This document shows positions 2,338-64,000 of a stretch of DNA of 64,000 nt, piece after piece. Made by a program: the position numbers and the translations under genes. The stretch is from Selaginella moellendorffii (taxonomy: Eukaryota; Plantae; Lycopodiophyta). The notes under the pieces are model-generated. The model had not been told where the DNA came from and made no database searches. It worked only from the letters and a program-made list of their open reading frames with translations. Position 1 is the first letter of the stretch, and every line of letters begins with the position of its first letter. The stretch is from positions 1,377,713 through 1,441,712 of the forward strand of contig NW_003314312.1 in assembly GCF_000143415.4 (NCBI RefSeq). Reading direction: 5' to 3'.

Positions 2338-2776
2338 ATCACAAGGATAAAGTACATCAGTGCCATGGCTAAGGATTTTATTGTTGTGACTGAGTCATCA
2401 AAGGGTATGAGCTACACTATCAGAATCTACGAAAATCCATCTTGTACCTATTCAGATTTTACACAAAAGGAGAACAGAGGAAAGGTATATTTAGCCTGCA
2501 AGCATATCTATTACATTTTTATGCAGAAACCAAACCAAGATCCTAAGATCAACCATCACATCCACCAGACAAGCCTTACAATTGCAGAGTTTGATAAGTG
2601 TTTCTAGATTACTTTTAGTGTTCAGATTTATATTTATATTTGTATTTTTTTGGTTGAATTTACTTGGAAATATAAATTAAATCAAAATTTGAAAAATGAA
2701 AAGATGTTGGTTTGGGACAAACCAATGTTTTTCTTGTGTTTGAGAAGCCATGAGCTCATGAGCTCAAAACCTACCC
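2338..2776 (+). mobile_element. 3' terminal fragment of the MULE-like family (SWIM finger plus terminus)
   Basis: ORF 2335-2607 (PSCTYSDF...ACKHIYYIF) matches 63495-63971. It ends in GAGCTCATGAGCTCAAAACCTACCC, the reverse complement of the ends at 49157 and 63300. Confidence 0.85.
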
Positions 2777-27645: not shown

Positions 27646-28868
27646 CTCTCATCCTGGCTATTCATTCAGACTTAAATCTCAGCCATCATGATATCTTCAA
27701 TCTTATTTTATGACAATATAACTAGCACTTGTCAATATTTCAGTTATTAGAGAAATGATATTATTTTTTCTAAATTATCTAGAAAGGATGCATTCTCATC
27801 AATATTTTATACATATTTTGGAATCATTACAAAAAAATTTAAGAGTATAAATAAGGCACGACAAAATATGTTGTACGATATTAATCTATAAATGGATGAA
27901 TCCTCATCCATAAATTTATTTTTTATTATATTAGAACCTAAACAATAGGTATGTGCTTTAAATGTGATTAACTAGTGTTCATAATTATGGATAAAACCCA
28001 ACTTGTATTTAGAATTGAATCTGTTATTGAAGAATTATTATTACTTAGCCTTAAGATTTGACAAGATTTATCATCACCTAGACATAAAATTTGACAACCT
28101 AACACTTCACACGTGTTGACAGTCAGATTGGATCACTTAGATCTACATGCCATAGTAGAATGTCATTACTGACATCACGACTAACAATCAGACTTCATGT
28201 ATTGAAAATTCTTTCTTGGATCTTTGTGTATATATGCATCAAACATCATAACAGATGACAATAACATTACAATTATCACATTTGCACATATTATATATGT
28301 TGTAGTATTTATATTCACTTTGTATATTATTGACCTTCTTCTTATTGCTCTCCTTAAATTCTAATTTATGTGTCATTATGAATTTTTACAAGCAACATAA
28401 AGAGAGAGAGAATTTTAAAACCTATTGAGAAGGATGGAAAGGTTTCTTCTACATTTTTAAGATCACCCACTTCTTTCATTCTCTTAAAGTATTGTTTTTG
28501 AAATTTTTTTATGTCAACATTTTGATTTTCATTTTGGCTCTATTTTGTTAAAGGCTGTGATTCGCCAAAACACCGGTATAATTGCATGCTCAGAGTTTCT
28601 TTTTTCCGGTGTGGGTGAGGGTGGACAGCAATGGGATTTATAGAATTCCAAATTGAAGGAGATTCAAGTTTTTGGATCTTCAATCAAAATGCTAAGATGC
28701 GCTTCAGCTAAAATGAATATGAAGCAAGAGTTAATTATCATCCTCTCCTCCTCCTTTAGTTCAAATGGAGAAGTCATATTAGTGCTAGTGCTAAATTCAC
28801 TGTCTCTATCTTCACCAATATTCAAATTTGTTAATAATGTTTTCTAGTTTTTATGCCTCTCAATCGAT

Positions 28869-30900
28869 GTGTACTTGTTTTTGTATAGGCCCATGAGTGA
28901 GCTTCCATCCTCCTATAACAACAACATTTTCTTTGAACTACCACCTCTTGTCAGTAGTATAGGTTCCAAATGGAAAGGGATGGAAACCAAACAGGATGTC
29001 CACAAATGGTGCAAGATCAAAACTAGACACTTCAAACATTTCAAAGGTATGGTATCTATAGTTTATTGTGGTGGGTATTTAGATTGCGTGAATGAAGTAT
29101 GTAATCAAGATTGCTGTAGAAATTCTATATTTTTTGAAGGGTTTGCAATCAATTCTCCTGCTCATGACACCATTGTTATTGGATTCAAGTGTCGATTTTG
29201 CAAAAAGTGCTCCTTTATGCTATCTACAAGGCTAGGATGTATTATTTTTTTCCAAAGGATGGAGTGGTTGGAAGAGCTATGGTGTATGTTGGCACACATA
29301 TGCATCCAATGCAGGAAGGGATACAAAGGAGTTCTCTCAATTGTTTCAAAGATGCTGTGTAAGAAAAAGCTATAAGAAACTCATTTGCAATTCCAAAGAA
29401 TATTTAGAAAACCGTCCTTAAGGATTTTATTGCAAGCACCATACTCAATTCGAGTTGCCAAAATACTCAACTAAACAAAGTTATCTTGCCGGACTTACTA
29501 TGAGGCATACAACTTGCTACTAGCTTGAGGAGGTACATCCATTGTAATTCACATATTATAATAATATCTTTTTCTTACATTATATTATTTTGGATAAAAT
29601 TTGGATGTGTGAATCTCGAGAGAGGAAGTTGCAATAAAAAACTGATTCCATCCTTAAATTGAAATGAACTTGTTCATATGAGTTCAACCATAGAAGTTGG
29701 TTTCTAGATAAAGTTGTGAATGAGCAAGAGCACCTCTTCATGTTCAAAATATTTATGATGGGCCCTACCTTAAGTGTAGATCTTGTTTCCTGAATAGATA
29801 TGTCTAAGTTTAATGACCTTGCAAATGCATGGGTACATTTTGACCATATGGAATGTATATCAAGTTGGACAACTATGGAAGGTCATGTGTATAATCCAAA
29901 GTAATTTATTCTCATTATATTAAAATGGTTGTAATATTTATATTTTCACAAGCTACGTTGTAATTTGATAATTGTGACAGTAGAGTTTAAAGTACAAGAC
30001 CAAACAGCCCAAGAATTATTTTGAAGGTCCCTCTCCAATATTGTGCTAAAGCAGGCTAGTAAGGTTGCAAACCTTTGTGGTTTCATGTTAGATGGGGCTA
30101 GTGCAAATTGGAATAGTGTCTAAGCAATTTTTGGAAATGGTCAACTAATGGAAGGTTGTAAGAGGACTTGTCAGTTCCATTGGGCAAAAAGCATAAACCA
30201 ACATTGCCACCTTATCAAGCTAAAATTTCACTAAGTGTTTAAGGAGTTGTGCAAATAATGGGCAAGTTGCATCCTCTGAAGAAGAGCATAAAGCAAAGGC
30301 AAATGAAATTTAGATATGGTAGCATAAAGATGGCTATGTAGATACAAGTTGCCTACCTCAACTTGAGTCATGGTTAGGGTGGTGGGAAGTTATAATATTC
30401 CAGTGGGGACATCACTCCATATTGGTTTCTATTTTTTCTTTTCATTTATTACCTCTTCATATCATCTTTTCCATTAGGATCAACCACTTGAGAACCTCAT
30501 ATACACCCCAATTGTGAATCTTTCTAAAAGTAAGCACTAGAGCTGGCATTCCTTTGAGGCAGGGAAAGGGAAAATGAATTTATATAAAGTGTGTCTATCA
30601 GATTTGATACGCGCTATAGAGCAGTAGTCAAAGCATTAGCATTTGAGGAAGGAAAATATGTAGGAACAAAGCTTTCTGTTGACATGTTATATGATAGGAT
30701 GAAGAGAAAATTGATTCCACCAGCTCGAACGGTGGCAACTGTAGTTGAAGAAGTGCTCTATGACATATCTATGGAGTACACTCTTCGGGCTTCTATTGGT
30801 GATATGAAGACTATCTACTCAAAGCGTCACTTTTCTTTTGCTAGTGAAGATGTTGGCATGAACCTTGGAGCAAAAAGCTCTTTGATATTAAGTATTATTC
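28869..30900 (+). pseudogene. Diverged MULE-like transposase (copy C)
   Basis: YNNNIFFELP..GMETKQD..WCKIKT..YCGG...C zinc domain. Downstream WVHFDHMEC, GFMLDGASANW and TCQFHWAKS correspond to the DDE core of copies A and B; many stops. Confidence 0.8.
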
Positions 30901-31309
30901 TACTCTAAAACACCGCCCCCAGACAAAGGATGGAGAAATGTACCCAACAATGTTTGCGAGAGTTCCAAAGGCATAGAAAATAAAATGCCCTTGGGAGTTA
31001 AAGCTCCTAAGGGCCCCTACACTATACCAGAAGGAAATTGTCAATGCTAGCAATGATGGCGATGCAAGTGATGATGAAGAGGAGGATGAGGAAGCTCTAT
31101 CAAGCTCACATTCCACCATCAGATGGTCAGACTCAAGCTCTAATTCCACCATCAAACATCTAGAATCCATATCAGATTCCACCAGCAAATGACAATGATC
31201 AAGTGGTTCATAGAATATCATGTTAACCTCGCCGTAAGCAAAAATGACTTTTGCAAAGCAAAGGTGGTAGCACATGTTTTTTTGTAAAAATGACTGTTGG
31301 TAGTAATTT

Positions 31310-32490
31310 CATTCCAACTCAACGAGATGCTTGTGATAAGGAGTTGGAGGAACTCTCATTGACAACATGCCATATGATAATAGCATATTATTCCTTAGTT
31401 TTCTCATTCACTTAGCTCTTCTATAAGTTCATCCTCTTTCCCCAATAACACACTAAGGCTCTGTGGGTGTCTTTATTGGCTTTTATAATAGATTGCTGAC
31501 ATCTTTCATAGAAGATGATATAAACATGGATATACAGCACTAGTTGGACCATTAGTGCCAAACGATACAAAAGCCCTTACTTCTAGTTACGTACTTCATT
31601 CTCTTTGACTTTCCAAACAGTCTTTTAGATATTAATGGGAAAGTTGAGGATTGGAACTTTCTTACACTTGACCATATGCATGATGCATTCCTCTTGTCAG
31701 AAACACTTATGCTTAAAGTTGGTTATGTCATTTTTATCCTACCCAACAACCTCAACTAGATATATGAGCTTATGATGTGTGCAACAAAAGTTCATTTCAA
31801 GTCTTTCTCTTCCAGATGCATTATGGATCCTATTGGCATCGATATTAAGTGTCCAAGGGAAGCCTAAAAAGGTGAGTAGGTATTTTTATATTTTAATCTA
31901 ATTTATAAATTTTCTTATTTTCTAGGTTATGATGTGGACCTATCATGCTTTTTATAGAAACGTGCATAATGCGTTTCATGATAATGACCATGTGGCATAT
32001 GTTTTTCCTGGGTATGATAATTCCACTAACATCATACCCAACCTTGTGGATAAACAGATCCATAACACATTTTTAGAGTATCGATTTTGAACTCCATCGG
32101 TGATGCAAGTCTTGTTTGAGCTCTATTGCCCACTAGATGGTGTTGTAATTGATTGCATAGCAAGTTGCAATTCTATGGTGGAGGCACCACATGTCTCTGG
32201 TAAATGGGTGTTTGTTATTGACTTTTTCAAACATCAGCTCAGAGGATTTCGTGAGCTGCCTACAACCTTAAGGAGGTAAATTATGTTTATTAAAATTTCA
32301 ATACATACTTAGTTCTATTTTATAGATCATAATCATTTAGAGTTTTTAGAATTAGAGGCTTTAGAAGTCTCCCCGACTATGCAAAAACCATTGCCCAATA
32401 AATGCAAGGTGAATCTTCCCCATAATACCAATATAGGAGGAGGCATAAAAGAAATCAATATGTTGATGATGAGGCAAGAAAAAGTTAATT
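31310..32490 (+). pseudogene. Beta-class DNA amino-methyltransferase homologue (copy C), tandem with transposase C
   Basis: Manual translation: FILFDFPN near 31595-31620; exon from 31926 reads VMMWTYHA...MQVLFELYCPLDGVVIDCIASCNSMVEA..SGKWVFVID. Collinear with 55581-56434. Confidence 0.7.
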
Positions 32491-46169: not shown

Positions 46170-49156
46170 TCTTGAACATCCTTGCTCAAATGCAAACTCA
46201 ACTCCAATGATGTTCAAAGATGCCTTCCAAACATAGCAAAGTAAGGATTTAATTTGGTTTCACTATGTTGACTATTATTGTAGGCAAATTGCACTAATAG
46301 AATATATAAATTCCTTTATCCCTGCTTTTGACCACCTCTAGCAAACCAAAATCAGGAAAGATAATTTCCAAGTAGACTACAATCAAGTCTTGAAGCAGTG
46401 ATAGTCTTTCTAATACCACTCTCAACTCCAATGTTGTTTTGAGATGTTTTCCAAATATGCAAAATAAGGACTTAATTTAGTTCCATTGTGTTGGATATTG
46501 TTGTAGGCAAATTGCACTAATAAAATATATAAATCCCATTGTCCTTGCCTTTAATCAATGTTACAACATAACATATCCTCCACTATTTGAGTTACATGCT
46601 TAATTTGCCCATTTGTCTAAGGATGATTTCCACTCAAGAGCTTCAAATTCACTTGCATAACTTTTGCAAAGCTTTTCTAAAATTCATTAGTGAACTTTGA
46701 GTCTTGATCACTAATGATATCCTCCGGCAAACCAAAATCAGGAAAGTCCTCTAAGTAAATTGCGACAATGATGATCTTCTGAAATGCCAATAATTGCACA
46801 TACTTTGTCAATTGATCCATTATAATCTATACTTACTTTTTTTGCCTTTGTATTCGTAGTAAGCAAGTGATAAATTCCATAAGAATATTACACCAATACC
46901 TCTAAGAAATAGGCAAAGGTTGTCAAACTCCCTTTGACTTCTCCTATGGCAGCTTTACCCACTGATAGAGCTTGCATGATTTACAATACTAAAGAATATC
47001 AACTTTCATACTCTTCCAATAAAAATTGCACATAATCAACTCATATGTCTTCATCCCTCTAAAATGATTATCCTTCGAATGATAATGATAGTGGAATAAA
47101 ATATGATGAATCAACACATCCAGCCGTGTCAAATATATATAGTCATTGTAGTAAAGAATTCTATCCACTAATGAGAAAGGTGCTTTTAGCTAAACTCATA
47201 AAGAGACTACCTCAATATCTTGAGCTTGAGCATGCTAAACCAATTGCTCTAACTCACTAACCACTTTACACAAATGATAGCAAAACCATGTTTGTAACTT
47301 CATCATATTTTGAACACAAGATAAAGCATTGGCCACCATATTTTATTTTCCCGAATGATGCTCAATAAGGAATTCTTTAAACTCTATGAGTTTGACCATT
47401 TAACAAGCTTGCATAGTGTTTAACTCTTTCTATGTGAAGAGATATATAAGAAGTTTGTGATCTATTAACACAATGAACATTACACCATAAAGATAATGCC
47501 TGCATATTTATAAAGCATGAATAGTGAAAAGTAACTTTTACTTATATGTGGAATATCTTTATTCCATAGGATTCAAAGTCCAACTCTCATATACAATAGG
47601 TTGTCCGTCTTGAATGAAAACTCCTTTTAATGTATAACCATTTACATTGCATATCACGTTATAAGGTTTTGATGGATTAACAATGCAAAGCATTAGAGCT
47701 TCACTTAACAATTGTTTCAATGCCACAAAATTATTTGCATGTGACTTTTTCCACTTGAATGGCACATTCTTACACAACAACTATGTCAAAACAATAGCCA
47801 CCTTCACAAACTTGTACTAAAAGTGTGAGTAATAACTAACGATACCAAGAAAATTGCATAACTCTTTACAAATTCATATTTACTCTTCTTTACATAAAGT
47901 TTGTTATTAGGTAGTAACGAGAGAACTTTATCCTTCATATTTTTGCTGAAAACAAGAATATCATTCAAGAAAATTTCCATAAACTCCAAACACTTCCATC
48001 ATCAACTAAGTAAATGTGGTTGGTGCATTTGTCAAACCAAATAGTATGATTGTGAACTCAATATGCCTGAAACTCATATTAATTGTCGTCTTGGAAATAA
48101 ATGTGTTATCCATTGCAATCTGAAGATATCCACTCCTTAGATTAATCTTGGTAAACACTTCTACTTTACCAAGCTTATTTAAGATATCATCCACATATGG
48201 CATAGGCATTTTATCTTTCATTGTCTTCTTGTTCAATGTATAATAGTTCATATATCTCTAATGTAATCTCATGCTCCACACCTCGTAATGGAGGCAACTT
48301 ATGAGGAAGTTTAAATGGAAAAACATTAAAAAAAAACTCCTCTGCACTGTTATTATACCAAATATAAATTCCTGAATTTGAACTTCCCAATAGGTCACCT
48401 AACTCAATACTATTCAAACTCAAAGAAGTTTAACTTTAACTATCCCAAGACCCTTATCCGTTCAAAAAATGTCTTGTTTATGGGTTTTTTCCCTTTATAT
48501 TTAAACCTTATAGATACTCAAGGTATAGTAGTCAATATATATCTGTATTGAACCATCCTTCAACAAGCAAGACTAGGGCACCAAACCAAGACTTACTTGG
48601 CTAAATGAATCCAAATTTAAATAACTCTTTGACTTGTCATTAAATTTCTTACTCCTCTATATAGCATTAGAAAAGTCCTTGAGTATCTTGAATGGCTGCC
48701 TCTCCCTCATACGTGCCTTAGTGCCCTAAGTCACGAACAAACAGTAAGTAACTTGAAAGTGTTTTTCCATTATAACTAACACACTTCAAAGGATGTAGTG
48801 GAGGCATAACAATTGGAGGCTAAACAACCCTTTCTAAACCATATATTTTTTATGCTATCATACTTTAGCGAGATATGCTTAATATTTCATTTTATCTTTG
48901 GATCCATCTTTGCCAACTATGACATCCCAAGAATGAGATCCATATCATAGATATGCTAGATAAAAAGTTTTAATATATATGATTTTGCCAACTAACACTT
49001 CCAGCCCGTCTACACAAACATTGAAATGTTAATTAGGAGTAATTGCACCTTCCACTATGCATGGAAGAACTCTTTGTATCACCACGGCCATGGCTTCTCA
49101 ATAAACTTTGTTAAAACAAAATTATCATCACTCCCACTATCCAATAAAATAAGACT
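46170..49156 (-). mobile_element. Eroded gypsy relic of the same family as 3543-8420
   Basis: Collinear with about 4270-7020 (KDKMPMP, LRSGY, FLND, KNVPFKW) but AT-shifted and full of stops; ends at the MULE terminus at 49157. Confidence 0.85.
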
Positions 49157-49331
49157 GGGTAGGTTTTGAGCTCATGAGCTGAGCTCACGGATTCTTAAAC
49201 ACAAGAAAAACATTGGTTCGTCCCGAACCAACATCTTTTCATTTTTCAAATTTTGATTTAATCTATATTTCCAAGTAAATTCAACCAATAAAATACAAAT
49301 ATAAATAAAGATCCAAACACTAAAAGCAATC

Positions 49332-52300
49332 TCAAAACACTTCTCAAGCTTCGCAACAGTAAGGCTTTCCTGGTGGATGTGATGGTCGATCTTAGGATCT
49401 CAGTTTAGTTCCTATATAAAAATGTAATAGATGTGCTTGCAGGCTAAATATACCTTTCCCCTGTTTTCCCGCTATGTAAAATCTGGACAAGTACATGATG
49501 GATTTTCGCAGATTTTGACAGTGTAGCTCGTACCCTTTGACGACTCAGTCATAATAACAAACTCCTTAGCCATAGCACTTATGTAGTTTGTCTTTGTGAT
49601 TGTGCACTTCAGCTCTTTTGCCAACTTGATCTTTACTTGTGCACCTTTTGAAATGGAAGACCTATATTGTACAGCCTTCCCATTCCTAGCTGGGCGTGTA
49701 TGCTGGTTTAGTGTTGATATTGGTGGCATAACAATATTAACAGCAACATTTGAGGAAGTCTTTAGCTTGAAACCTACTCTCTTAAGACTTTCAATCTCTT
49801 CTTTCAAAAGATTGCAGCTTCGCTTAATTGGCCACTCCTCTGGCATAGAATCTAGCTTCAAAATAATTGAGCTGTGGATCCGGTTTGTATGAGTAACATC
49901 AGTCCCACAATAGTAAATCCAACTTGACTGGCAGCCCTTTACCCCTAGATCTTGACAGCCCCAGAAACATGGTACTGTTGAAGAACTTGAACCTGAGCGC
50001 ACAAATGCGAGACACTGACCTCAACTCCCAATCATTCCGGAGCAACGTGCATTGCTCTTGGCACTGACTCTTCGAATTGCCAAGTTGATACAAGAAACTA
50101 GCTCACGAGAAATAACCTTTTCAACCTTTTGCACTGGACTTACTTGTGTAACAACTGGCACCTCCTCCACTCCATGTTCCTTAGTTCTTTTCCAGTGTCA
50201 TAGAACAGAATGGTAGTCAAACTTTGGATGGTGAGAGCTAGAAGGAGTGATGTTTGGCCCATCAAATGTTTGTCGATGCTTCATACGGGCTGTTTTCATG
50301 TCCCCAAGTGGTTTATAACTTGATTTCATAGGAGTTCTAACAACAACTTCCTCCACCATCTTAGATATTGACCCTGCTGCTGGTGTTGTCCTTCTACCAA
50401 CCCGCTCTCGAAGCCTGTCTAAGTTTGGACCTGTACCAGCAAACCTTGCTTCTTGTGCAGCCAAAGCTTTTGATGATTGCTCAAGAGATCTAGTGAGGTC
50501 AGATAGTGTAGCTTCATTGAGGGACACTTTTCCTTTCCCTACTTTGGAAGCTCTCCAACTCCAATGTTTGCTCTCAGAAAGATTAATTGTTGGTGTAAGT
50601 GCTATATCATCAAGTGATTGATCCTATGAAAAATGCAACATTTGAAAGTGATAAGAAAGAAAATGAGAGAAAACTTACATGGAGAGTATAATGACCCCAC
50701 TGAAACATTTGAACTTCCCACCATGCAAGCCAACATTCCATTTGTGGAAGTTTTTCAATTGGCACTTTGTCTCCTTCACGCCACCATATATGCATCTCAT
50801 TTGCCTTTGCCTTGTGCTCTTCTTTAGTTGGTGCATCCATCCATTCCCGACAAAGCTATTTGAACTCATGATGGAAGTTAGATTTGATGCATCGGCAATA
50901 TTCGTTGACACTCTTTGCCCAATGAAACTCACAACTCTTCTCTCTACCTTGTAACGACTGACTTTTATCACCTCCGAATACTTGTCGTACAGCCAACTAG
51001 TTAGCACTAGCAGCATTTGCCATGAAACCATGAAGTTGTTTCTTCCTGGTTCGTTGTTCAACAACTTCGGACATACATGTCCAAAAGATGGTTTGTGCTT
51101 GGAAATCTTGAACCTTGAATTTGGCTATAGCTATAGTCAAGTTGCACTGCAATCTATAGAAGGAATGGTTAAAAAATGAATAACCACTTACTTGTGATCA
51201 TAAACATGAGCTTCTATAGTTGACCAGCTTGAAACTCGTTCCATGTGGTCGAAATGGATCCAAGAATTAGCCAAGTCCCCATCTCCATCCATATCCATTC
51301 GTTGTACAAAGTCCACACCAGAAGCAAGACCAAGGGTAGACATCTTAAAGATGAAAGGGCGTTGATTGTTTGATGTCACTTGGCTAATGAACAAGCTCCC
51401 ATGAATAAACTCATAGGGATATTTTCTCTTTAGCTCCAAAATCCCATCCAATCCAGATTGAAGATTTCCATTTCGCCCTTCTCGCATCCAGTTCTTTATT
51501 CTACCAAAACAAAAAGTGTTATTAGTGATAAAGTAGAGTTAAGTACTAATTTTATACCTGTTTAAATTTGTCACGGGTTCTATATTTCGAGGTAGGTCCT
51601 TCAAGCTATTCTCCGTGAACTCTTTTTTGCTATCAGATTGTAGCAATATGTCCACCACATAGTCCTTTAGTACAAACTATTGAACACACTTTGGAGTTGC
51701 AGCACTTTTTTTCCCAACCTCTGTAGTAACAACAGCCTTCAAATTGCGAAAAGAATCATGGCAGATTCCTTCCTCTATTGCGTGTTGGTGGTATCCAACA
51801 TGCACTGCTTCTTTGCCTAAACATCCATCCCGTGGAAGAAAATAATACATTTTCGCATCGCAACATGCTTGACACATAGGTGTTGCCCCGCATTTGCAAC
51901 ATCTAAACCCTATAGCAACCTCATCACGCCTAGAGGGATTGATCACTGAGCCTTCAAAGAAATACATATTCTTGCCATGATCAGAAATGCATTTCTCACC
52001 GACACACTGAAGCTGTCCACCACAATGGACTATGGACACAAATCCGTCGAAATGAGAGAAGTGGGTTGTCTTTACTCTGCACCAATTATATGGATCAAGA
52101 CGCGTCTCCATACCCTTTTTCCTACTTGATGAACTGGTTAGTGGAAACTCAAAGAATATATTCCCATTATAGGAAGAAAGAAGCTCCTCACCTCTCATAT
52201 ACTGGAACTCCAATTCCAACCGTAATGATCGAGATTGCCGAAATGCCTTATCCACTGCTTCAAAAACTGGTCCAGAAAGAACACACCTACTTGTCTGGGA

Positions 52301-52684
52301 AGCTATGTCGGGAAGCTTATCTTCTTCATTTTCGTCACTAGAGAGAATAACAACTTCATCCTTCACTCCTTGCATAGTTAGCTGTGAAATTGATGCGCTC
52401 TCCTCTACTCGCTTCGGAGATCTTGTAATTAGAATCTCCTGACCTATACATCTATCAAGATCCCATTGAATCCCATTTTCTCCCACACCATTGTCAAGAA
52501 GAATGGATTTTTCTATTTGATTACCCTTATCATGACATACATTCTCCAAACTAACTGATTTCGGCTTCAGCTTGAATCTTCTGCAGAGGAAGCTCTCTCC
52601 TATAACACTCTTAGAAAAAACAATTGAAGGCTCTTGATTAAACTTCAAATAGAATTCTCTCATATCTTCTCCTTGCTCGAGCAC
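49332..52684 (-). pseudogene. MULE-like transposase A (GCM/WRKY-like Zn domain, DDE core, SWIM), intron-containing
   Basis: HCGGQLQC...CCKCG...CCDA...HVGYHQH; WIHFDH; EFHWAK; NLSESKH; CTCPDF...CKH. Several stops and frameshifts. Confidence 0.82.
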
Positions 52685-52929
52685 TTAGAAAAAATTTGGG
52701 GAGAAACTGACAAAAAAGAACAAAGATATTCTTTTGTATTGTGAGCATTAATTAGCTATGTCCTTGTAAAGGACAAGTTAATTATTTTAACAAATTATAT
52801 AACCGTTTAGAATCTAGAGAGATATAAGAATTTTAAAGAGCCACCCATATTAATTGTATAATTGATTGTGAGAGGAATAATATTGTTGAAATGAATATGG
52901 TTATGAGTGAGAAGCGCTAGTCAATCACA

Positions 52930-55366
52930 ATAACTGGCCGAATAGAGTTAGTGACTATTGAACTTGAGGAAAAATGGGATCCTATATGGCTGTGAAAGTC
53001 TCGTGAGTTTGATGGATTCTTAAGACAACATGTGGAGACAGCAGGGTTCATTGGAAAGCTCTTTTGGGTGATCGATGGAAACCATAGGTGGCTAGCATTT
53101 TGGAAGTGCATTCAAGAGAAGTTCCGAGATGACGAAGAACGACACATGAGTGTTTCAGTCACACTTGTCGAACCAATGACTTGGGAGTACACCGTGAAGC
53201 TCAACATGGCATGCCATAAGATCAACATGTAAGAATTTACTTTTTGTAAACTTAGCCAATATCATGTTTTTGCAGGCTAAACCAATTTGTGTTTCAAGCT
53301 CATACATTGGTACATGACATTGAGCACCTTCGGTTTATTGGCATGCTCTCACTAGAGGAGGTCCAAACATTGTACAATTGTGAGGTATTTGAAGCAATTC
53401 GAGTGAAGCTAGCAGCTAGGAAAGGCCAAGAATTGCAGACTTGGTACCAGCTGCCACTTGATTTTCTAGTTGTTGTCTGGGCGAAGGTAAATTAGTATTG
53501 AAGTATGTATCAACTTACATAATGTTTCTTGCAGCCCATAATCAAAGGAGAAAGAGCGTCATTCTTTAAAAATGCCCAAGGGGACGAGTAGTAAAAGGAG
53601 ATGGAGTGGCATGCGATTGAGTAGCAAATTTTGAATACGAAGAGAACAAAGGTGAAAAAGTTGCTCTTGATTGTAGACATACGATGCAGGCAGGAATGGC
53701 TTGATAGCATTGTGGAGATTTGTTCTCGCGTTTATAAGTTCTTCTAAAATTTGTGAAACACTTCATAACTCTTTGTGTGTGTAGGAATTGGTAAAGCACC
53801 GGAGGAACTCATTTACAACATCTCCAAGAGTAAAATGTCCTTTGCTGAACAAAGCGTGTGCTTGGACTTTCTCAACACTTGGCTGCGAAACAACGAAAAA
53901 CATTGTGAGATAAGGATGGAGAAGATGATGAAGGAGAAGGCGTACATTTCTCAGAGTATTGTTGTTGGTGAGGAGATGCTACAAGTTTGGGATGAGAAGT
54001 TTCTTTCCAGCACCTGCACAGGTATCACTCTCGAAGAATATATTCGTGTTTGTCTTGTGGAGCTAGGGAATGGTTGGCTTCCACGTGGTGGGATGAGTTC
54101 GGCTGAGTTCAAGAACCAACCAGGACAACCATTTCTTGCGAGGTGCATGGTTTATAGGTATTTTCTCAATTCTCATTTATATATTGGTATTTATATATTT
54201 ATTTTACTTTGTAGATATTTAAAATATTGCCCCGGTGCACTGGTATACACAACTGGTGTTTTGCAGAAGCTCTTGACTAGAGGCAAGAAGTTTGGGATGT
54301 ATGAGCCAGAGTTCTACTGTCCTTGTACACATGAGAGGGAGCTATGCCAATGGTACCTTGAACTCATGGAGCAGATGCCGACATCAGACTTCACGCTAGA
54401 TCTCTACCTTGAATGTCATCCAGGTTCATTTGAAACTCAGCACTTGGCTAGGAAATATTAACCTTGAGTTATATTCTTATTTTCCAGAGGCTCTTTCTAA
54501 CTATGATAACGATGTTGTTGAAGTTCAATAACTACACCCAGGAGTCCACACTCAGGAAACCATTCAGGAGATGCCAAATCCAAATACCATTGAACCAGAG
54601 GAAACTGTACAGGAAATTCCACCACAAGAGATTCCAGTACCTGCTCCTCGTAACCCCCAAAGGGGCCGTTGTGAAGCCTTTTATGAGAGTAAGGACTTTG
54701 ATTTGGAACATTCTTTTATTCATTCTTGACTTCACTTTTTTCTTATAGATGTTGCAGAGAGCAGCCATCAGTCTTCTCGGCAGACTAAGACATTCTTCCC
54801 ATCCCTCCCTATGGCTACAGACGACGACTTAGAAGAGCTCTCCTCAGCAGCTATGCATAAACAGGTTAGTAAGCATGAATTTTATTTCCAACTTTTAGTT
54901 CTAATAGTTGATTTTCAGGTTCGCCCTCTATCCCCAATGGCCAGTGTTGGGGAAGTTGTTGTTCTCATTGGGGATTACACACAGCTTTTAGATGCTACTA
55001 GTCGGGAGATCTACATGCTTGATCGGTGGATCCATGGTCTGGGTCAGCTCACACCTTATGGGAAGATCGATTTCATCTTTTTCAATCTTCCCAATGGGAT
55101 ACCACCACCGTAGGGGGATACTCCGTCATGGAATGTGTTGTAGGCCCAACACATTTCCCAAGCCTTAAAGGTTGCGAGTAGCTTCATGACATATGAGGGT
55201 GTGGTTGTCATGATCCTTCCCCACTCTCTAATGTGGGAAGGCCTTCTTGCACACTTGGCTGATAACAATGATGGATTTGTTGAGTTTTCATTTGGCTGCC
55301 TTCTTTTGAGTATGGCAGTGGACACAAAAGGCACTAGTGGGCAAAAGCGAAAGGCAAAAAAATTCG
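52930..55366 (+). pseudogene. ParB/Srx-like domain plus N-terminal half of a beta-class amino-methyltransferase (copy A), truncated at both ends
   Basis: FWVIDGNHRWLAF (ORF 53032-53232); IDFIFFNLPNG (54811-55113); MTYEGVVVMILP (55186-55371). The pieces are linked by short GT-AG introns. Confidence 0.7.
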
Positions 55367-55384
55367 ACTAAAAAAAAACTAAAC

Positions 55385-58300
55385 TTAGTCTTCCTCGACA
55401 TCCACATCCACAAAAGGAGGAGTTTATATAGTATTATGCTCTCTAACTATGGGCTTTTCTTGTATATGAGTTTGTGCCATTGCTTCTGTATAACATGGCA
55501 AATGATAGCCCACATCATTGATCCACCTAATATACATAACCATGATGGAATTATTATAAGGAGAAATTTATACTTTATTATCACCTGTTATGAAATGTCC
55601 CAAGAACACCTTCAAATGCACTCTCCTTCTTTAGTGCAAAAACTGCATGCCTAATCTTTTTAGCTGCTAGCACCATCGAACCAAAACCTAGTGTAGCATC
55701 AAGCACAATCCCCTTAGGAAGACAAAACAACTCTAGAAGGATTTGCATGGCCTTTGGTGAACGGTGTTGATAGCCAGGGAATTCTATATGATAGTCCTTG
55801 TTGATGACATTCGGAATGATATCTGTTGAGCTATCATATCTTGGCAATGCCAAACCTGCACACTCATCAGCTCGTGTAATACTATGATGGCAAGAGTAGC
55901 GGCAGAGAGCATGGTAGTTCCATGCTAAAACCTACAATGAAAAGAGGCAATCAATTTAAGATATTGAAAATAAGGAAATGCAAACCTTTTGGATTCGGCC
56001 ACCAGCTCCTTTTGTTTTGACTGAGATGTTTGAGAGTAGGTAGCCTGATGCAAACTCAACAATCTAGAGTCATTATTCTCCGCCATTGTTGCAAGAAGAC
56101 CTCCCCAAAATAAAGAACAGGGAAGAATGACTAGCATAATGCCCTCGTATTGCAACACCTTGGATGCCACATCCACTGCTTGAGAAATATGGTCCGGCCG
56201 AAGGATGTTCCAGGATGGAGTGTCACCTTGTAAAGGTGGTAACCCATCAGGCAAGTCGAAGAATGCGAGGTTGATGCTGAAAGTATTGTTCATTCCCAAT
56301 CCTTGCATCCATCGATGGAACATAGAAGACTCTCGGCTCACGTTGTTGGAAAGCTGAAAGTAGTCCCCAATAACTATTTCTATGTTGCCAACACTTCCTG
56401 TAGGAGAAAGAGGGCAAACCTGAATAGTGTTCAAAACCGGGAAATATTAAAGTTAATACATGTTTGTTTTCATACCTGTTTATGTGAAGCTGATGAAGAT
56501 AACTCTTGGAGGTCATCCTCTGTAGCAATGGGGAGGGATGGAAAGAATGCATTTGTACGTCGATGTATAGAGTGCTAGCTAGTTTCTTTGACATCTACAA
56601 CAAAATTACAATAAGCAAGGTCATTGGATATCAAGTTCTTACTCTCTTGGACGTCCTCACTATGGAGTTGCCTTCGTACATTTCGAGCAGTCGGGGCTGG
56701 ACGAGCAGTGGCAATAGGATCTGGGGAATGAGCAACTGTTGTAGGATGAGATGGGGCAGGAGAATTTTCAGTCGGGTTCTCCACTCGTTTGTCTTCGGTC
56801 TGCTCAATATGAATCTCATCCCTGTCTTGAGGCACTCCCTCCAAAAGTGCCTCTACAATAAATTAGAAACATAAGTTACTACTAGGAAATTGTACTCATC
56901 AAACCTAGATGACACTCAAGGTAGAGATCAAGCTCAAAAGGTGACGATGGCATTTGCCTCCACAACTCCAAGTACCATGGACAAAGTTCTCTCTCCTGCG
57001 TAGTGGAACACTGGAACTTTGGCTCATATATGCCAAGTTTCTTCCCACCAATTAAGAGCTTGAGAAAAACACTTGTTGTGTACACTAGAGCACCTGGGCA
57101 ATGATTGAAATACCTACAAAAGAGCCATGATGAAATAAACAAGTCAATTTCTTGCAATATACCTATATGCCATGTGGCACGAGAAAAATGGTTGGCCCGG
57201 CTAGTTCTTGAAATCTATAGAGCTTGAGTTGCCATCAGGAAGCCATCCATCCCCAAGCTCTTGAAGGGAAGCTCAGACATATTCTGGAAGTGTTATGCTG
57301 GTGCAGGCACTAGTAAGGAACTTCATAATTGTCAAGGCGGAGCAAAACTCATATTTGAAGATTACGCAAGTGATCGATGAGGTGTAAAAGAACCTTGAAC
57401 TACGACAAATTGAGCAGCACATTTTGAACTTGAAGAAATCAAAGGTGAAGAAGCTACTTGCAATTGCAAATATTTGCCACGATAAAGATTGGTTGGATTG
57501 CATTGTAGAGATATGCTCTCATGGTAGTAAGTTAGTCCCTTTTATCTTTCTCATTCCACTTTGAAATCTTTGTCCTTGCAGGAAATGGTAAATCACCTGA
57601 AGAATTGATCTATAACATCGCAAAAAGTGAGCTCTCCTTCAACGAACAAACCTTTTGCTTGGAACTCCTTAACACTTGGCATCGTAACAATGATAAGAGG
57701 TTGGAAAGCAAATTTGAGAATGTGATGAAGGAGATGCTCTATATCACTCAGAGTATTGCAGATGCTAAGGAGCTACTTCAAGTATGGGATGGCTAAAAGG
57801 AAAACTTGTGAGTAGAAAACACAAGTTCATGCAAGAAAAGGATACCTTTGCCCAGACCGCAACCAAAAAATCCATAGACACCTCTTGTAAGTAAGTACCA
57901 AGTAAGCAACTCTTGGCCTTTACATGCTACAAGCTTTGCTTGAACCGCTTCCATAACTTCACGAATATACAGCATTTGGATTTTGTGGAGAGAAAGCATG
58001 CCGACATATCGAAGGTGCTCGATATCATGGACAAAGGTATGTACTTGGAAACCAAACTGATTAAGCCTATAACATAGTTGGTGAGAACAAAGGTTACAAG
58101 TAAAAGATTCTTACATGTTGATCTTGTGACATGCCAAGTTGAGCCTCACAACTTGGTTTCAATCCTGTGGCCCCACAAGCATCACTGGAACACAAATATA
58201 TTACTCGTCATCATCTTGGAACTTCTTTTGGACACACCTCCAAAACACAAGCCACCGGTGGTTTCCATCAATAATGAAGAACATTCGGCCTACAAAGGCT

Positions 58301-59097
58301 TGTGTCTCCTTGTGGCACACCATCAAAGTATCAAACTCTTGAGATTTCCTCTACCATATTTGATCCCAAGTCTGCTCAATCTCGTGAGTAACCATATCTA
58401 TGCGATTTGTTCAGGGGAATGATGACGACACAATAAATGATCCAGCAGTGTGCCCGAATCCAACCTCTATGAAAGAGATATAAATAGCCATGTTGAGGTC
58501 GTAGGCTGAGCGCACCCAGTGACTCTGCTTAAGACAGCAAAGTGGAATCTCAAGATGTTGGGATCCTTTCTAAGCCATTTCACCTAACACCCTGCTGATA
58601 GTTCATTCTTGAGTCTGGACAATAGTCTCGTGTACTTGCTCATTCAAGATCGTGTTGGCCTCTAGCATAGTTACCACCTCATTTCTATGACCTTTAGGAG
58701 CAGCAGCATGTCCACCATTTCCACCACCAAGATTTGCCCCACCATCTATAGCACTAGGTGCCTCATTTCTACCACCAAGTTTTGCACCATCACCACTAGC
58801 AGCTTCTCCTGTGCTATAGCTAGCTTCTGCATTTCCATGCTCTCTAGAACCATCTGGCTCCTGCATGCTAACACCTGGATCAGGATCAACTATTACTTGG
58901 ATCTGGACACCACTGCTCCCACCATGATCTTCCTCCGAAGCAGCACTTTGAACTTGTGAGGTGTCCCTAGTGAATCTAGCACAACGATCTGTCATTTTCC
59001 TGGAGAACGGGTCTATTGAGGTTGACTGGCACGCTTCTTCTGTTGTGGCATGATTTATATATCTGCATGAAAATGACAAATAAACTTGAATAAACAT
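55385..59097 (-). pseudogene. ParB/Srx-like plus beta-class DNA amino-methyltransferase gene (copy B), most complete copy, with stops and an internal inversion
   Basis: FIIDGNHRWLVFW near 58240-58280; INLAFFDLPDG and KVLQYEGIMLVILP (ORF 55925-56434); YQHRSPKAMQILLELFCLPKGIVLDATLGFGSMVLAAKKIRHAVFALK (55581-55853). Confidence 0.75.
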
Positions 59098-59111
59098 TAA
59101 AAAAACTGTGA

Positions 59112-59585
59112 AGCAGTTCCCTTGGCACTAGGAAGATCAATTCATCACCAAACCGATCTTCTCAGTGTCAAGGGAACAAAAAAAAGAAGAAAAGAAGCAG
59201 TTCCCTTGGTGCTGGGAAGATCGGTTCGTCACTGAACCAATCTTCTCAACGCCAAGGGAACAAAAAATAGAAGAAAAGAAGTAGTTCCCTTGGCATAGGA
59301 AGATTGGTTCGTTGCCAAACCGATCTTTTCAGCGCCAAGGGAAAAAAAAAGAAGAAAAGAAGCAGTTCCCTTGGCACTGGGAAGATCGGTTCATCACCGA
59401 ACCAATCTTCTCAGCCCCAATGGAACGACAAGAAACAAAAAAAAACCCAGAACCTGATGTGCTGGGAAGATCGGTTCGTCGTTGAACCGATCTTCTCAGC
59501 ACCAATGGAATGACAAGAAAAAAGAAAACCCAGAATCTGATGTGCTGGGAAGATCGGCTCGCTGCCGAACCGATCATTCCAGCGC
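59112..59585. repeat. Tandem array of six palindromic units (about 81-85 bp period) with A-rich linkers
   Basis: Core GCTGGGAAGATCGGTTC-N6-GAACCGATCTTCTCAGC; units 1-3 extend the stem with GTTCCCTTGG/CCAAGGGAAC. Confidence 0.9.
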
Positions 59586-59792
59586 AAAGTAGCCATGAGG
59601 CGCAAGTTACTTGCTAGGAGTAAAAGATGGGGAGATGAAAAAGCAGCAAAGAGAAGCATAACTTGATTGAGGAGTGTCTTTCTAGTGTCTTGAAGAGCAT
59701 CTAGCATCCTGTTTGAGAAGCATCTTGAAGCATTCAAGTGTTTTTCTCTTGCCCTTCCTTGCTCAAACCCTAGCAGTAAAACCCTAAAAATT

Positions 59793-59846
59793 AACGGTCA
59801 CGATCAATGGTCACTATCAACAGTCACAATCAACTGTCACGATCAA
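59793..59846. repeat. Four 13-bp tandem repeats next to AAACCCTA motifs in the divergent intergenic region
   Basis: AACGGTCACGATC AATGGTCACTATC AACAGTCACAATC AACTGTCACGATC; AAACCCTA near 59765 and 59779. Confidence 0.7.
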
Positions 59847-60165
59847 TTTTTTAACAGTACTTGGATATATTTATAGGACAAATCCACTAAGGAGAACAAG
59901 CAATTAATGTTACAACTCTCGTGATTAATCAGCGCCTCTCACTCATAACCCCAATCATTTCAACAGTATTATTCCTCTCACAATCAATTATACAATTAAT
60001 ATGGGTGGCTTTTTAACATTCTCATATATCTCTAGATTCTAAACGGTTGTATATTTTGTTAAAATCTTTAACTTGTCCTTTGCAAGGACACAGCTAATTA
60101 AAGCTCACAATACAAAAGAATATCTTTGTTCTTTTTTGTCAGTTTCTCCCTAAATTTTTTCTAAG

Positions 60166-63100
60166 TGCTCGAGCAAGGAGAAGATATGAGAGAATTCTAC
60201 TTGAAGTTTGATCAAGAGCCTCTAATTGTTTTCTCTAAGAATGTTATAGGAGAGAGCTTCCTCTACAGAAGATTCAAGTTGAAGCCGAGATCAGTTAGTT
60301 TGAGAATGTATGTCGGGATAAGGGTAATCAGATAGAAAAATCCATTCTTCTCAACAGTGGTGTGGGAGAGAATGGGATTCAGTGGGATCTTGATAGATGT
60401 ACAGGTCAGGAGATTCTAGTTACAAGATCTCCAAAGCGAGCACAGGAGAGTGCATCAATTTCACAGCCAACTGTGCAAGGAGTGAAGGATGAAGTTGTTA
60501 TTCTCTCCAGTGATAAAAGTGAAAAAGATGAACTTCCCAACATAGCTTCTCAAATAAGTAGGTGTGTTCCTTCTGGACTAGTTTTTGAAGTGGTGGATAA
60601 AGCATTTCGGCAATCTCAATCATTATGGTTGGAATTGAAGGAGTTCCAGTACATGAGAGGTGAAGAGCTTCCGTCTTCCTATAATGGGAATATATTCTTC
60701 AAATTTCCACTGGCCAATTTGTCAAGCAGGAAGAGGGGCATGGAGACACGTCTTGATCCACATAATTGTTGCAGAGTAAAGACAACCCACTTCCCCCATT
60801 TCAACAGATTTGTGTCTATAGTCCATTGTGGTGGACAGCTTCAATATGTCGCTGAGAAATGCATTTTTGATCATGGCAAGAATATGTGTTTCTTTGAAGG
60901 CTCAACGATCAATCCCCCTAGGCGTCATGAGGTTGCTACAGGGTTTAGATGTTGCAAATGCGGGGCAACACCTGTTTGTCAAGCATGTTGCGATGCAAAA
61001 ATGTATTATTTTCTTCCACAAGATGGATGTTTAGGCAGAGCAGCAGTGCATGTTGGATACCACCAACACACAATAGAGGAAGGAATCTGCCGTGATTCTT
61101 TTCGCAATTTGAAGGCTGTTGTTACTACAGAGGCTAGGAAGAAAAGTGCTGCAACTCCAAAGTGTGTTCAATAGTTTGTACTAAAGGACTATGTGGTGGA
61201 CACGTTGCTACAAACTGATGGCAAAAAAGAGTTCACGGAGAACAACTTGAAGAAGTTTCTTCAAAATATAGAACCCGTGACAAATTTAAACATGTATAAG
61301 TTAATATTTAACTCTACTTATCACTAAAAACACTCTTTTTTTAGCAGAATAAAGAACTGGATGCGAGAAGGGTGAGATGGAAAGCTTCAATTTAGATTAA
61401 ATGCAATTTTGGAGTTGAAAAGAAAATGTCTCTATGAATTTATTCATGGGAGTTTGTTCGTTAGCCAAGTGACTTCGAATAGTCAACACCCTTTCATCTT
61501 TAAAATGTCCACCCTTGGTCTTGCTTCTGGTGTGGACCTTGTATAACGAATGGATATAAATGGAGATGGTGACTTGGCTAATTCCTGGATCCATTTCAAC
61601 CATATGGAATGAGTTTCAGGCTAGTCAACAATGGGAGCTCATGTTTATGATCACAAGTAAGTGGTTATTCATTTTTTAAGGATCCATACCGATTTACATT
61701 ATAACCATTCCTTTTATAGGTTGCAATGCAATTTGATTATAGTTATAGCTGAATTCAAGGTTCAAGATTTCCAAGCACAAACCATTTTTTGGACATATAT
61801 GTTCGAGGTTGTTAAACAGCGAACCGGGAAGAAACCCAACTTCTGTGGTTTCATGGCAGATGTTGCTAGTGCTAACTGGTTGGCTGTACGACAAGTATTT
61901 GGAGGTGATAAAATTCAGCCATTACAAGGTAGAGAGAAGACTTGTGAGTTTCATTGGGCAAAGAGCGTCAATGAACATTGCCGATGCATCAAGTCTAGCT
62001 TCCATCACGAGTTCAAACAACTTTGTCAGGAATGGATGGATGCACCAACTAAAGAGGAGCACGAGGCAAAAGCAAATGAGATGTGTATATGGTGGTGTGA
62101 AAGAGACAAAATGCCAATTGAACACCTTCCACAAATAGAGTGTTGGCTTGCATGGTGGGAAGTTCGAATGTTTCAGTGAGGCCATTATATTCTCCATGTA
62201 AGTTTTCTCTCATTTTCTTTTTTTGTCACATTCAAATGTTGCATTTTTCCTAGGATCAACCACTTTATGACATTGCATTTACACTAACAATTAATCTCTC
62301 TGAGAGCAAACATTGGAGTTGGAGAGCTTCTGAAGCAGAGAAAGGAAAAGTGTCCCTATATGAAGCTACACTCTTCGACCTCACTAGATCTCTTGAGTAG
62401 TCATCAAAAGCTTTGGCTGCACAGGAAGAAAGGTTTGATGGTACAAGTCCAAACTTAGACAAGCTTCGAGAGCAAGTTGGTAGAAGGACAACACCAGTAG
62501 CATGGTCAATATCTAAGATGGTGGGGGAAGTTGTTACTGAAACTCCTACAAAATCAAATTATGAACCACTTGGGGACATGAGGACAGTCCTTTTGAAGCA
62601 TCAACAGACATTTGATGAGCCCAACATCACTCCTTCTAGCTCTCCAGAGCTTGATTACCATTCTGTTCCACAACACCAGAGAAGAACTAAGGAACATGGA
62701 GTGGAGGAGGTGCCAGTTGTTACTGAAGTAAATCCAGTGCCAGAGGTTGAGAAGATTATTGCTCGTGAGCAGTTTCTCATATCAACTGGGCAATTTGAAG
62801 AGTCAATGCTAAGAGTAATGTGCGTTGCTCTGGAATGATTGGGAGTCGAGGTCAGTGTCTTGCATTTGTGTGCTCAGATTGAAATTCTTCAACAGTACCA
62901 TGTTTCTGGGGTTGTCAAGATCTAGGGGTAAAGGGCTGCCAGTCAAGTTGGATTTACTATTGTGGGACTGATGTTACTCATACAAACCGGATCAAAAGTT
63001 CAATTATCTTGAAGCCAAATTCTATGTCAGAGGAGTGGCCAGTTGAGTGAAGCTGCAATGTTTTAAAAGAAGAGATTGAAAGTCTAGAGAGAGCTGGTTT

Positions 63101-63277
63101 CAAACTAAAGACTTCCTCAAATGTTGCTATTGATACTGCTATGCCACCAATATCAACACTAAACTGGCATACATGACCAGCTAGAAATGGGAAGGTTGTA
63201 TAATATAGGTCTTCCATTTCAAAAGGTGCACAAGAGAAGATCAAGCTAGCAAAGGTGTTGAAATGCACAATCACAAG
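60166..63277 (+). pseudogene. MULE-like transposase B, truncated before the SWIM domain
   Basis: Inverted close copy of 49600-52690; GFMADVASANWLAV (second catalytic D) and KTCEFHW (CxxH). Confidence 0.82.
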
Positions 63278-63299
63278 TGTCGTGGTTAAGGAGGAGCCC

Positions 63300-63974
63300 G
63301 GGTAGGTTTTGAGCTCATGAGCTCACGAGCTGAGCTCATGAGCTGAGCTCACGGCTTCTCAAACACAAGAAAAACATTGGTTCGTCCCGAACCAACATCT
63401 TTCCATTCTTCAAATTTTGATTTAATCTATATTTCCAAGTAAATTCGACTAATAAAATACAAATATAAATATAGATCCGAACACTAAAAGCAATCTAAAA
63501 ACACTTCTCAAGCTCCGCAACTGTAAGGCTTGCCTGGTGGATGTGATGGTCGATCTTAGGATCTTGGTTTAGTTCCTGCATAAAAATGTAATAGATGTGC
63601 TTGCAGGCTAAATATACCTTTCCCCTGTTCTCCCGCTGTGTAAAATCTGGACAGGTACAGGATGGATTTTCGCAGATTTTAACAGTGTAGCTCGTACCCT
63701 TTGATGACTCAGTCACAATAATAAACTCCTTAGCCATAGCACTGATGTAGTTTGTCTTTGTGATTGTGCACTTTAGCTCTTTTGCCAACTTGATCTTCTC
63801 TTGTGCACCTTTCGAAATGGAAGACCTGTATTGTATAGCCTTCCCATTCCTAGCTGGTCGTGTATGCCGGTCTAGTGTTGATATTGGTGGCATAGCAGTA
63901 CTAATAGCAACATTTGAGGAAGTCTTTAGCTTGAAACCTGCTCTCTCCAGACTTTCAATCTCTTCTTTCAAAAG
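63300..63974 (-). mobile_element. MULE-like terminal fragment D (terminus plus SWIM-coding 3' end)
   Basis: GGGTAGGTTTTGAGCTC... terminus; ORF 63495-63971 has intact CTCPDF...CKH; similarity to copy A ends at about 63974. Confidence 0.85.
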
Positions 63975-64000
63975 AGCTATTCGCGTGACCGATGCCTATT

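Follow-up and report, generated by a model that had tools for sequence, protein, structure and literature searches.

Mobile elements are known to carry DNA-modification genes, and elements with DNA- or chromatin-modifying genes of their own (DNMT, Dam, TET/JBP, Arabidopsis VANDAL VANC) show how transposons fight host silencing. Retrotransposons carry DNMT genes for C5 methyltransferases (MTases; PMC5890265) or prokaryote-like Dam adenine MTases, whose catalytic pocket is reported to be preserved (bioRxiv 10.64898/2026.05.21.726589), and fungal DNA transposons (KDZ, hAT, EnSpm, Harbinger, Helitron, and others) carry TET/JBP dioxygenases within complete terminal inverted repeats (TIRs) together with target-site duplications (TSDs) (PMC12730594). 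Among accessory genes of Mutator-like elements (MULEs), VANC, with its anti-silencing function, and SET are precedents for chromatin-directed proteins (PMC12730594). Marchantia MpDN4MT1, a host gene active in sperm, keeps the motif TSPPY (bioRxiv 10.1101/2021.02.12.428880). Here we analyzed a stretch of 64,000 nucleotides of Selaginella moellendorffii DNA (the window), in which a transposase-like gene is paired with an intron-bearing gene for an MTase-like protein at 49157-63277. The pairing belongs to a real multi-copy TIR transposon family with a selectively maintained homologue of phage-type amino-MTases; the theme itself is already known. The Iyer-Zhang-Aravind survey of eukaryotic N6A-MTases (PMC4738411) does not mention Selaginella, and no earlier description of this transposon family was found in the literature; Repbase may have an entry for it.

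Within the window, the pairing is one repeat in two copies, A and B, which are inverted relative to each other and both broken. Each comprises a transposase-like gene and, on the opposite strand, the intron-bearing accessory gene in head-to-head orientation (transposase at 52684-49472 on the minus strand in A, 60165-63276 on the plus strand in B). An earlier note on this DNA had described the gene as lying next to each transposase. All motifs quoted there were found in frame: VIDGNHRW in copy A (52996-53229, plus strand) and IIDGNHRW in copy B (58350-58204, minus strand), the motif IV region with FIFFNLPNG in A (within 54919-55110) and LAFFDLPDG in B, and, in B, KVLQYEGIMLVILP followed by the last motif HRSPKAMQILLELFCLPKGIVLDATLGFGSMVLAA (55931-55584, minus strand), which is missing from A because A ends at 55354. 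The introns are real, with GT..AG borders, a length of 51-56 nt and the same codon position in A, B and an intact paralogue in host gene space. Since the pairing of gene and transposase recurs in copy C, a diverged and much older relative in the window, and in six further genomic loci, it is not due to chance. The observation is confirmed, and its interpretation as a prokaryote-type DNA-modifying module adopted by a cut-and-paste element is, taken as a whole, partly supported.

Profile and sequence comparisons show the C-terminal domain of the accessory protein to be a true homologue of the beta-class N6_N4 MTases (PF01555), as had been proposed. Aligned by hhalign to six phage genes, each confirmed as PF01555 at E 1e-23 to 6e-32, the family alignment gave a probability of 96.4% and an E-value of 1.3e-9 over motif X/I. 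A second, colinear alignment set LVDFVFFDMPDGL on SVDAIITDPPYGL, the colinear blocks joining query positions 52-68 to template positions 18-34 and 208-255 to 266-313. The PADLOC profiles mad2 (E 4.2e-7) and MTase_II for type II MTases (E 5e-5) matched as well. With the domain of the host paralogue, tblastn matched 418 of 50,697 phage records, and among the 20 listed all 19 annotated rows fell under DNA methylase genes; an alignment to Zeuska gp58 that covers 88% of the domain in one piece supports the order IV ... X ... I. Language-model (Atlas) features reached 0.96 with 193 shared features, all of them N6_N4, and the sub-threshold Pfam N6_N4_Mtase matches were rightly placed at positions 169-217 of 221 (E 0.24 for copy B, 0.055 for the host paralogue). 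In a maximum-likelihood tree the Selaginella clade was separated from phage MTases with support of 100/99. A chance match of motifs as the source of the likeness is ruled out by the hhalign E-value and the PADLOC matches.

Direct sequence search does not bridge to prokaryotic MTases, since phmmer, run exhaustively with the MTase piece of copy B on 1.8 billion representatives, returned 30 proteins, none of them bacterial or viral. All protein matches were S. moellendorffii gene models: the middle domain found 20 and the MTase piece 30, of which one is a spurious repeat protein. Among PDB sequences, phmmer and profile searches found only TTHA0409 at E 0.35, the profile search being degraded by fragmentary exon rows, and beta-class MTases (CcrM, TTHA0409, M.BceJIV, M1.HpyAVI) occurred only among the weak Foldseek matches of a poor model.

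The motif order IV, X, I is the circular permutation of the beta class. In amino-MTases, the second Pro and the aromatic residue of motif IV and the Phe of motif I line the pocket for target base and cofactor. Instead of (D/N/S)-P-P-(Y/F/W/H), motif IV reads DMPDG in the host paralogue, DLPDG and NLPNG in B and A, and DFPNS in copy C, all aligned to DPPYG, so that the second Pro and the aromatic residue are absent from all four lineages; the degeneration which the earlier note had suspected is a shared feature, D-[LMF]-P-[DN]-[GS]. Motif I (VVDATAGCGSM or VLDATLGFGSM, compared to D-P-F-x-G-S-G-T) keeps the D and the GxG, with P and F replaced. The canonical catalytic pocket is probably not preserved, yet the altered motif is conserved in itself.

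Eight further loci were fetched from the genome. Head-to-head pairs of the gene and the same transposase occur in L002, L003, L004, L011, L012, and L013, and 9 of the 10 transposon-type loci keep the gene linked to the transposase. The elements terminate in imperfect inverted repeats that can be aligned over 30-45 bp; one end reads GAGCC(C/T)GGGTAGGTTTTGAGCTCATGAGCTCA, the opposite end GGGGCTGGGTAGTTTTTGAGCTGAGCTCA. Three elements have recognizable borders: that of L004 spans 12.2 kb including a 5-kb insert (TSD TCCTTACC), that of L011 spans ~8.9 kb (TSD [G/A]CCAAAGTG), and in L002 an internally deleted derivative of 6.6 kb is nested in another copy (TSD AAGGAGAAG). Since both gene and transposase lie inside the TIR/TSD boundaries in all three, they were mobilized together, and for transposon-type copies the finding that would have spoken against the earlier reading, a gene outside the family's termini or unlinked to its transposase, was not borne out. 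A host gene cluster merely adjoining transposons is ruled out by this enclosure. The L002 derivative (L002:3073-14777), which retains both TIRs, part of the transposase and most of the gene, sits in the middle-domain exon of the other copy with a clean 9-bp duplication.

A palindrome of the form GGTTYR(N2-6)YRAACC occurs seven times in the window compared to 0.2 expected, and all seven sites lie within this family, at ~60-90 bp inside the transposase-side ends and, for four of them, in an array of 84-bp hairpins. Each unit of ~84 bp is a hairpin around GGTTCR(N4)YRAACC. At the other loci the palindrome is present at both element ends and in the array, and the host locus has none. We infer from this distribution that the palindromes are candidate protein-binding sites. 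The hairpin array between the divergent genes was also seen at L004:20335-20728 and L014:9409-9661.

The transposase had been called Mutator-like, a claim that holds for the architecture and lacks a matching MULE profile. TIRs and TSDs of 8-9 bp agree with the TIRs and 8-11-bp TSDs of MULEs. Read by eye, without a profile, the core is LTIAIAKFKVQDFQAQTIFW ... GFMAD ... CEFHW with ~66-70 residues between two D and a CxxH after the second, and a C-terminal zinc-finger pattern CTCPDFTQRENRGKVYLACKH (CxCxnCxH) is present, to which Pfam SWIM aligns at E 0.051 and 13.6 bits (cut-off 19.6). A tblastn search of plasmids with the core gave no matches to IS256-type transposases. By architecture the enzyme fits a Mutator-like transposase, without a confirming profile. 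Zisupton has a SWIM finger too, and the 8-bp TSD together with the SWIM-like finger would fit Zisupton/KDZ as well. An origin in Zisupton/KDZ or another superfamily with 8-bp duplications would explain why the duplication in two of the three elements consists of eight perfect bases with a mismatch at the ninth, as Zisupton makes 8-bp TSDs (PMC12730594), and no Pfam MULE match was obtained. We consider this origin distinctly unlikely: one clean 9-bp TSD was checked against the uninterrupted target, and the residues of the core are MULE-like to the eye, though not by profile test.

The two halves of the element differ strongly in their divergence. The transposase arms of A and B form an inverted repeat with 87-92% identity and a synonymous divergence (dS) of 0.20; the accessory-gene halves share 64-70% of their DNA and 46-67% of their protein sequence. 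With a dS of ~1.7 between types A and B compared to 0.20 for the transposase, divergence is about ten times higher in the gene halves, and the two halves are therefore ~ten-fold apart in age. The switch in similarity (~90% to ~69%) falls in the intergenic hairpin region, which implies that the gene cassette, or the transposase, was exchanged between lineages. A single large inverted duplication of one locus is ruled out by the same figures. Between the types the ratio of nonsynonymous to synonymous divergence (dN/dS) of the gene is 0.15, which shows long-term purifying selection; within types, the ratio rises to 0.44-0.57, a range that would be expected where constrained change is mixed with change after insertion.

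These values bear on whether the gene is a passenger, picked up by accident from the host gene LOC9661604 or a paralogue of it in the manner of Pack-MULE transduplication, with no role for the element. MULEs do capture host genes, a solo intact paralogue with common intron positions exists in host gene space, and the tree is compatible with the host copy as outgroup. Pack-MULE cargo is, however, unconstrained and usually fragmentary, whereas a dN/dS of 0.15 was maintained here over a dS of ~1.7 in a full-length multi-exon gene of constant orientation across loci. In addition, the MTase module is kept in copy C despite a transposase that is only 39-47% identical in amino acids, and all four lineages share the degenerate form of motif IV. 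We therefore judge accidental capture to be very improbable. MTase homology, enclosure in the element ends, recurrent linkage, and purifying selection argue for a gene that is a working part of the element and not a passenger.

The host-resident paralogue, LOC9661604 (models P0032 and P0046; GL377567.1, ~3.9 Mb), is intact and was not anticipated by the earlier note. Its neighbors are RPL29, an SMP-domain gene, SINA, GPx, and an ABC transporter, and no transposase, TIR, or palindrome was found within 10 kb. GT-AG intron positions are common to LOC9661604 and types A and B. The observed/expected ratio of CpG is 1.03 at 49% GC in LOC9661604 (L001:10001-13177) compared to 0.30-0.45 at 40-42% GC in all transposon copies, a contrast that reads as the signature of a long-term unmethylated gene against repeats silenced by 5-methylcytosine (5mC). 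The maximum-likelihood tree leaves host, C, and (A,B) as a trichotomy. Because of this trichotomy, and of a solo paralogue outside any element, the direction is not fixed between capture and domestication: either LOC9661604 donated the module, or it is itself a copy that was domesticated. New in this analysis are this intact solo paralogue and the ~10-fold greater divergence of the gene halves over the transposase halves.

For the N-terminal half of the protein, a ParB/Srx domain had been proposed on the basis of the DGNHR motif. A DGxHR or GxxR loop after a hydrophobic strand is indeed present, as FFVVDGNHRLLAW in the host, FWVIDGNHRWLAF in A, and FFIIDGNHRWLVF in B, and the loop FFVVDGNHRLLAW is conserved. 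The only repeated profile match was DGQHR (TIGR03187, DndB branch of ParB/Srx; E 0.0028-0.0057, two of 15 members), and the Atlas features of the region scored 0.95 for DUF3723 and 0.92 for ParB_N with few shared features. Pfam ParB_N, DndB, and DUF3723 gave no match even at E 10, a PDB search with the region returned nothing usable, and among 476 phage MTase records scanned no listed entry was annotated as a ParB fusion. Motif, the DGQHR match (E 0.003-0.006), and language-model likeness lead us to lean towards a ParB/Srx assignment, with the domain probably belonging to the DndB/DGQHR branch of this fold; Pfam and structure prediction did not bear the proposal out. Residues 60-290 of P0046 have language-model features nearest to eukaryotic hypothetical proteins (Porifera, Mollusca) and fungal DUF3723. 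In fungal Starship elements, DUF3723 is often found among the accessory genes, and the likeness, without a Pfam DUF3723 match, serves as a lead only.

We consider it likely that the window holds nested, decayed copies of a TIR transposon in which a gene with ParB-like and MTase-homologous domains was a working part. An intact element would measure ~9 kb, with imperfect TIRs of 30-45 bp, an 8-9-bp TSD and subterminal GGTTCG..CGAACC palindromes, and would carry two divergent genes, transposase and accessory gene, split by a hairpin array built on the same palindrome. The accessory protein is predicted to have ~800 aa, with a low-complexity N-terminus, the DGNHR domain, a helical domain of ~300 aa, and the C-terminal N6_N4 homologue. 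It may bind element DNA, possibly at the palindromes, and may act on this DNA or its chromatin to the element's advantage, for instance by counteracting the host's 5mC silencing or by assisting assembly of the transposition complex. A protein that binds S-adenosylmethionine (SAM) or DNA, with no or non-canonical catalysis, is our tentative view of its biochemistry. A true writer of N6-methyladenine (6mA) or N4-methylcytosine (4mC) seems doubtful, and something else altogether is a little less probable still.

Self-marking or anti-silencing had been suggested as the purpose of the gene. In this reading an active epigenetic writer, a functional N6-adenine/N4-cytosine MTase, would mark its own element, and the host would have domesticated a copy. 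Homology to DNA amino-MTases and purifying selection speak for such an enzyme, as do residues kept in all lineages (GxG in motif I, D and P in motif IV), and DNMT and Dam retrotransposons and fungal DNA transposons with TET/JBP provide precedents (PMC5890265; bioRxiv 10.64898/2026.05.21.726589; PMC12730594). However, motif IV is without its second Pro and aromatic residue and motif I without its Phe, and the CpG depletion of the copies (observed/expected 0.30-0.45) indicates that host 5mC silencing won, which makes an active writer rather doubtful. Improbable is the fuller version, in which a working non-canonical amino-MTase would be directed by the ParB-like module to the palindromes at the ends and promoter, a 6mA, 4mC, or other mark would oppose 5mC silencing, and LOC9661604 would have been domesticated as a host DNA-modification gene.

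Several results weigh against a working accessory gene of the kind preferred here. Catalytic and SAM-pocket residues are non-canonical, and Pfam N6_N4_Mtase reaches 13.8 bits compared to a gathering score of 26.7. The AlphaFold2 model of the host protein (P0032, alignment of 36 rows) was poor, with a predicted local distance difference test (pLDDT) score of about 50, and had no Foldseek match in the PDB below E 0.001. The ParB assignment is sub-threshold, as TIGR03187 gives 16.4 bits for the host member (cut-off 58.85); AlphaFold2 of the DGNHR region (15 rows) was unusable at a pLDDT of about 50, and tblastn of this region against phages and plasmids gave unrelated matches only. No exon piece of the transposase matched Pfam MULE (PF10551 or relatives) at E up to 5, the pieces being intron-split, and a protein database search with its N-terminal 335 aa found no match. 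At one type-B locus, L014, no transposase lies at a distance of 10 kb or less. Stops, frameshifts, or rearrangements make pseudogenes of all transposon-borne copies examined, and three RNA-seq runs (~27 million reads) contained 4 reads at a likeness of at least 90% and one short contig, so that transcription of the family is essentially absent from the runs read. None of the indexed RNA runs holds the stretch.

The features of the family in the window are compiled in Table 1.

Table 1. Positions of the transposon family's features in the window
Feature	Position	Strand	Basis
Copy A, transposase-side TIR (first ~7 nt gone) and subterminal palindrome GGTTCGTCCCGAACC at 49215-49229	49157..49229	+	terminal motif search, palindrome scan
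Copy A, transposase pseudogene	49472..52684	-	open reading frames (ORFs) and frames; 87-92% inverted repeat with copy B; dS 0.20 to copy B
Copy A, accessory gene (type A)	52996..55354	+	ORFs, motifs, copy comparison
Copy B, accessory gene (type B)	55357..59118	-	gene 59118-55584, stop at 55584
Six tandem hairpin units of ~84 bp between the divergent genes	59094..59588	.	repeat families and palindrome scan
Copy B, transposase pseudogene, ends ~430 bp short of its terminus	60165..63276	+	ORFs, inverted repeat with A
Copy D, transposase-side TIR (GGAGCCCGGGTAGGTTTTGAGCTC... from ~63293) and transposase C-terminus	63289..64000	-	repeats, SWIM E 0.05, terminal motif
Copy C, diverged relative: transposase, then MTase-like domain on the same strand	28434..32276	+	homology search
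Family fragment: transposase C-terminus and transposase-side TIR (2776-2752 on the minus strand), subterminal palindrome at 2709	2338..2776	+	homology, terminal motif, palindrome scan

All copies in the window are broken, as had been noted. Copy A is truncated at both ends: position 49157 coincides exactly with the terminal motif GGGTAGGTTTTGAGCTC, homology with other copies begins at 49161-49167, and the other end abuts the truncated end of copy B at 55357. Its transposase has an N-terminal Cys/His-rich region, a putative DDE core with GFMADAASANW and CEFHW, and the C-terminal, SWIM-like CxCxnCxH. What remains of gene A is the DGNHR domain, the helical middle domain, and, counted from the N-terminus, two thirds of the MTase-like domain, without the C-terminal motif X/I. 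A deletion of ~2.1 kb relative to L003 has removed exon 1 together with the upstream array. Gene B comprises a low-complexity exon 1, the DGNHR domain, the middle domain, and the full MTase-like domain (FFDLPDG ... VLDATLGFGS), and is disrupted by a 380-bp inversion (57409-57791) and, near 56063, by a frameshift; the element has also lost its final ~215 bp and with them the gene-side TIR. The transposase of B is interrupted at 63276 by copy D, which was inserted into copy B or abuts it, has an intact CxCxnCxH (63971-63495) and extends past the window edge. Several premature stops in transposon copies are of the CGA-to-TGA or TGG-to-TGA/TAG type (for example DDDK*HIY in L004, QSH*MRS in L003).

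In copy C, the MTase-like domain reads FILFDFPNS ... VVIDCIASCNS, and no DGNHR domain, middle domain, or SWIM-containing exon was detected at 28434-32276. An acidic, serine-rich linker lies between its transposase and MTase-like domain. Copy C may be a transposase-MTase fusion or represent another gene order in an older lineage. In the fragment at 2338-2776 the terminus is oriented opposite to the transposase C-terminus. Immediately beyond the left end of copy A (46989-48423, minus strand) there are ORF fragments of a retrotransposon reverse transcriptase with motifs such as PYVDDIL, and this region is related at 74-79% to L004:6421-8531, inside the ~5-kb insert of the L004 element.

This family places a plant DNA transposon among the mobile elements with known DNA-modification genes; its copies in the window are dead and silent. 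If a cut-and-paste element of a plant carries a conserved homologue of phage-type amino-MTases, both the enzyme class and the host lineage would be new among the elements that oppose silencing. Transposon-borne copies beside one intact host-resident paralogue constitute a natural experiment, by which it can be asked whether DNA amino-methylation, or a catalytically dead derivative of the enzyme, serves a vascular plant, and whether such host genes come from transposons or the reverse.

Compared to the beta-class N6_N4 MTases of phages and plasmids (PF01555), the motif order IV, X, I is the same and motif X/I is recognizably conserved. The Selaginella gene differs in being spliced, eukaryotic, and transposon-borne, in its ~800 aa with an extra helical middle domain of ~300 aa, and in a motif IV of D-[LMF]-P-[DN]-[GS] instead of (D/N/S)PP(Y/F/W). 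ParB_N-MTase fusions likewise have a DGxHR-type domain ahead of the MTase; in Selaginella this domain is weakly DGQHR with no ParB_N match. MULEs with accessory genes (MuDR with mudrB, VANDAL with VANB/VANC, Kaonashi with ULP1, Phytophthora MuDR with SET) are TIR transposons with a transposase and a co-mobilized second gene as well, but their accessory proteins are unrelated to the prokaryote-type amino-MTase homologue found here, whose transposase has no profile support for its superfamily. In the fungal TET/JBP elements an enzyme module moved from one transposon lineage to another, a parallel to the unequal ages of gene and transposase in our family, although this family belongs to another kingdom and has an MTase-like domain with a degenerate catalytic motif in place of a dioxygenase. 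The DNMT and Dam retrotransposons are likewise mobile elements with co-opted DNA MTases, adenine MTases of prokaryotic type included; the Selaginella family, in contrast, consists of DNA transposons, and the N6_N4 (PF01555) homologue that they carry has an altered pocket. MpDN4MT1, too, comes from a land plant and is of the prokaryotic beta-class amino-MTase type; going by its description, the Selaginella family is set apart from it by a motif IV without PPY, by other extra domains, and by being mostly transposon-borne.

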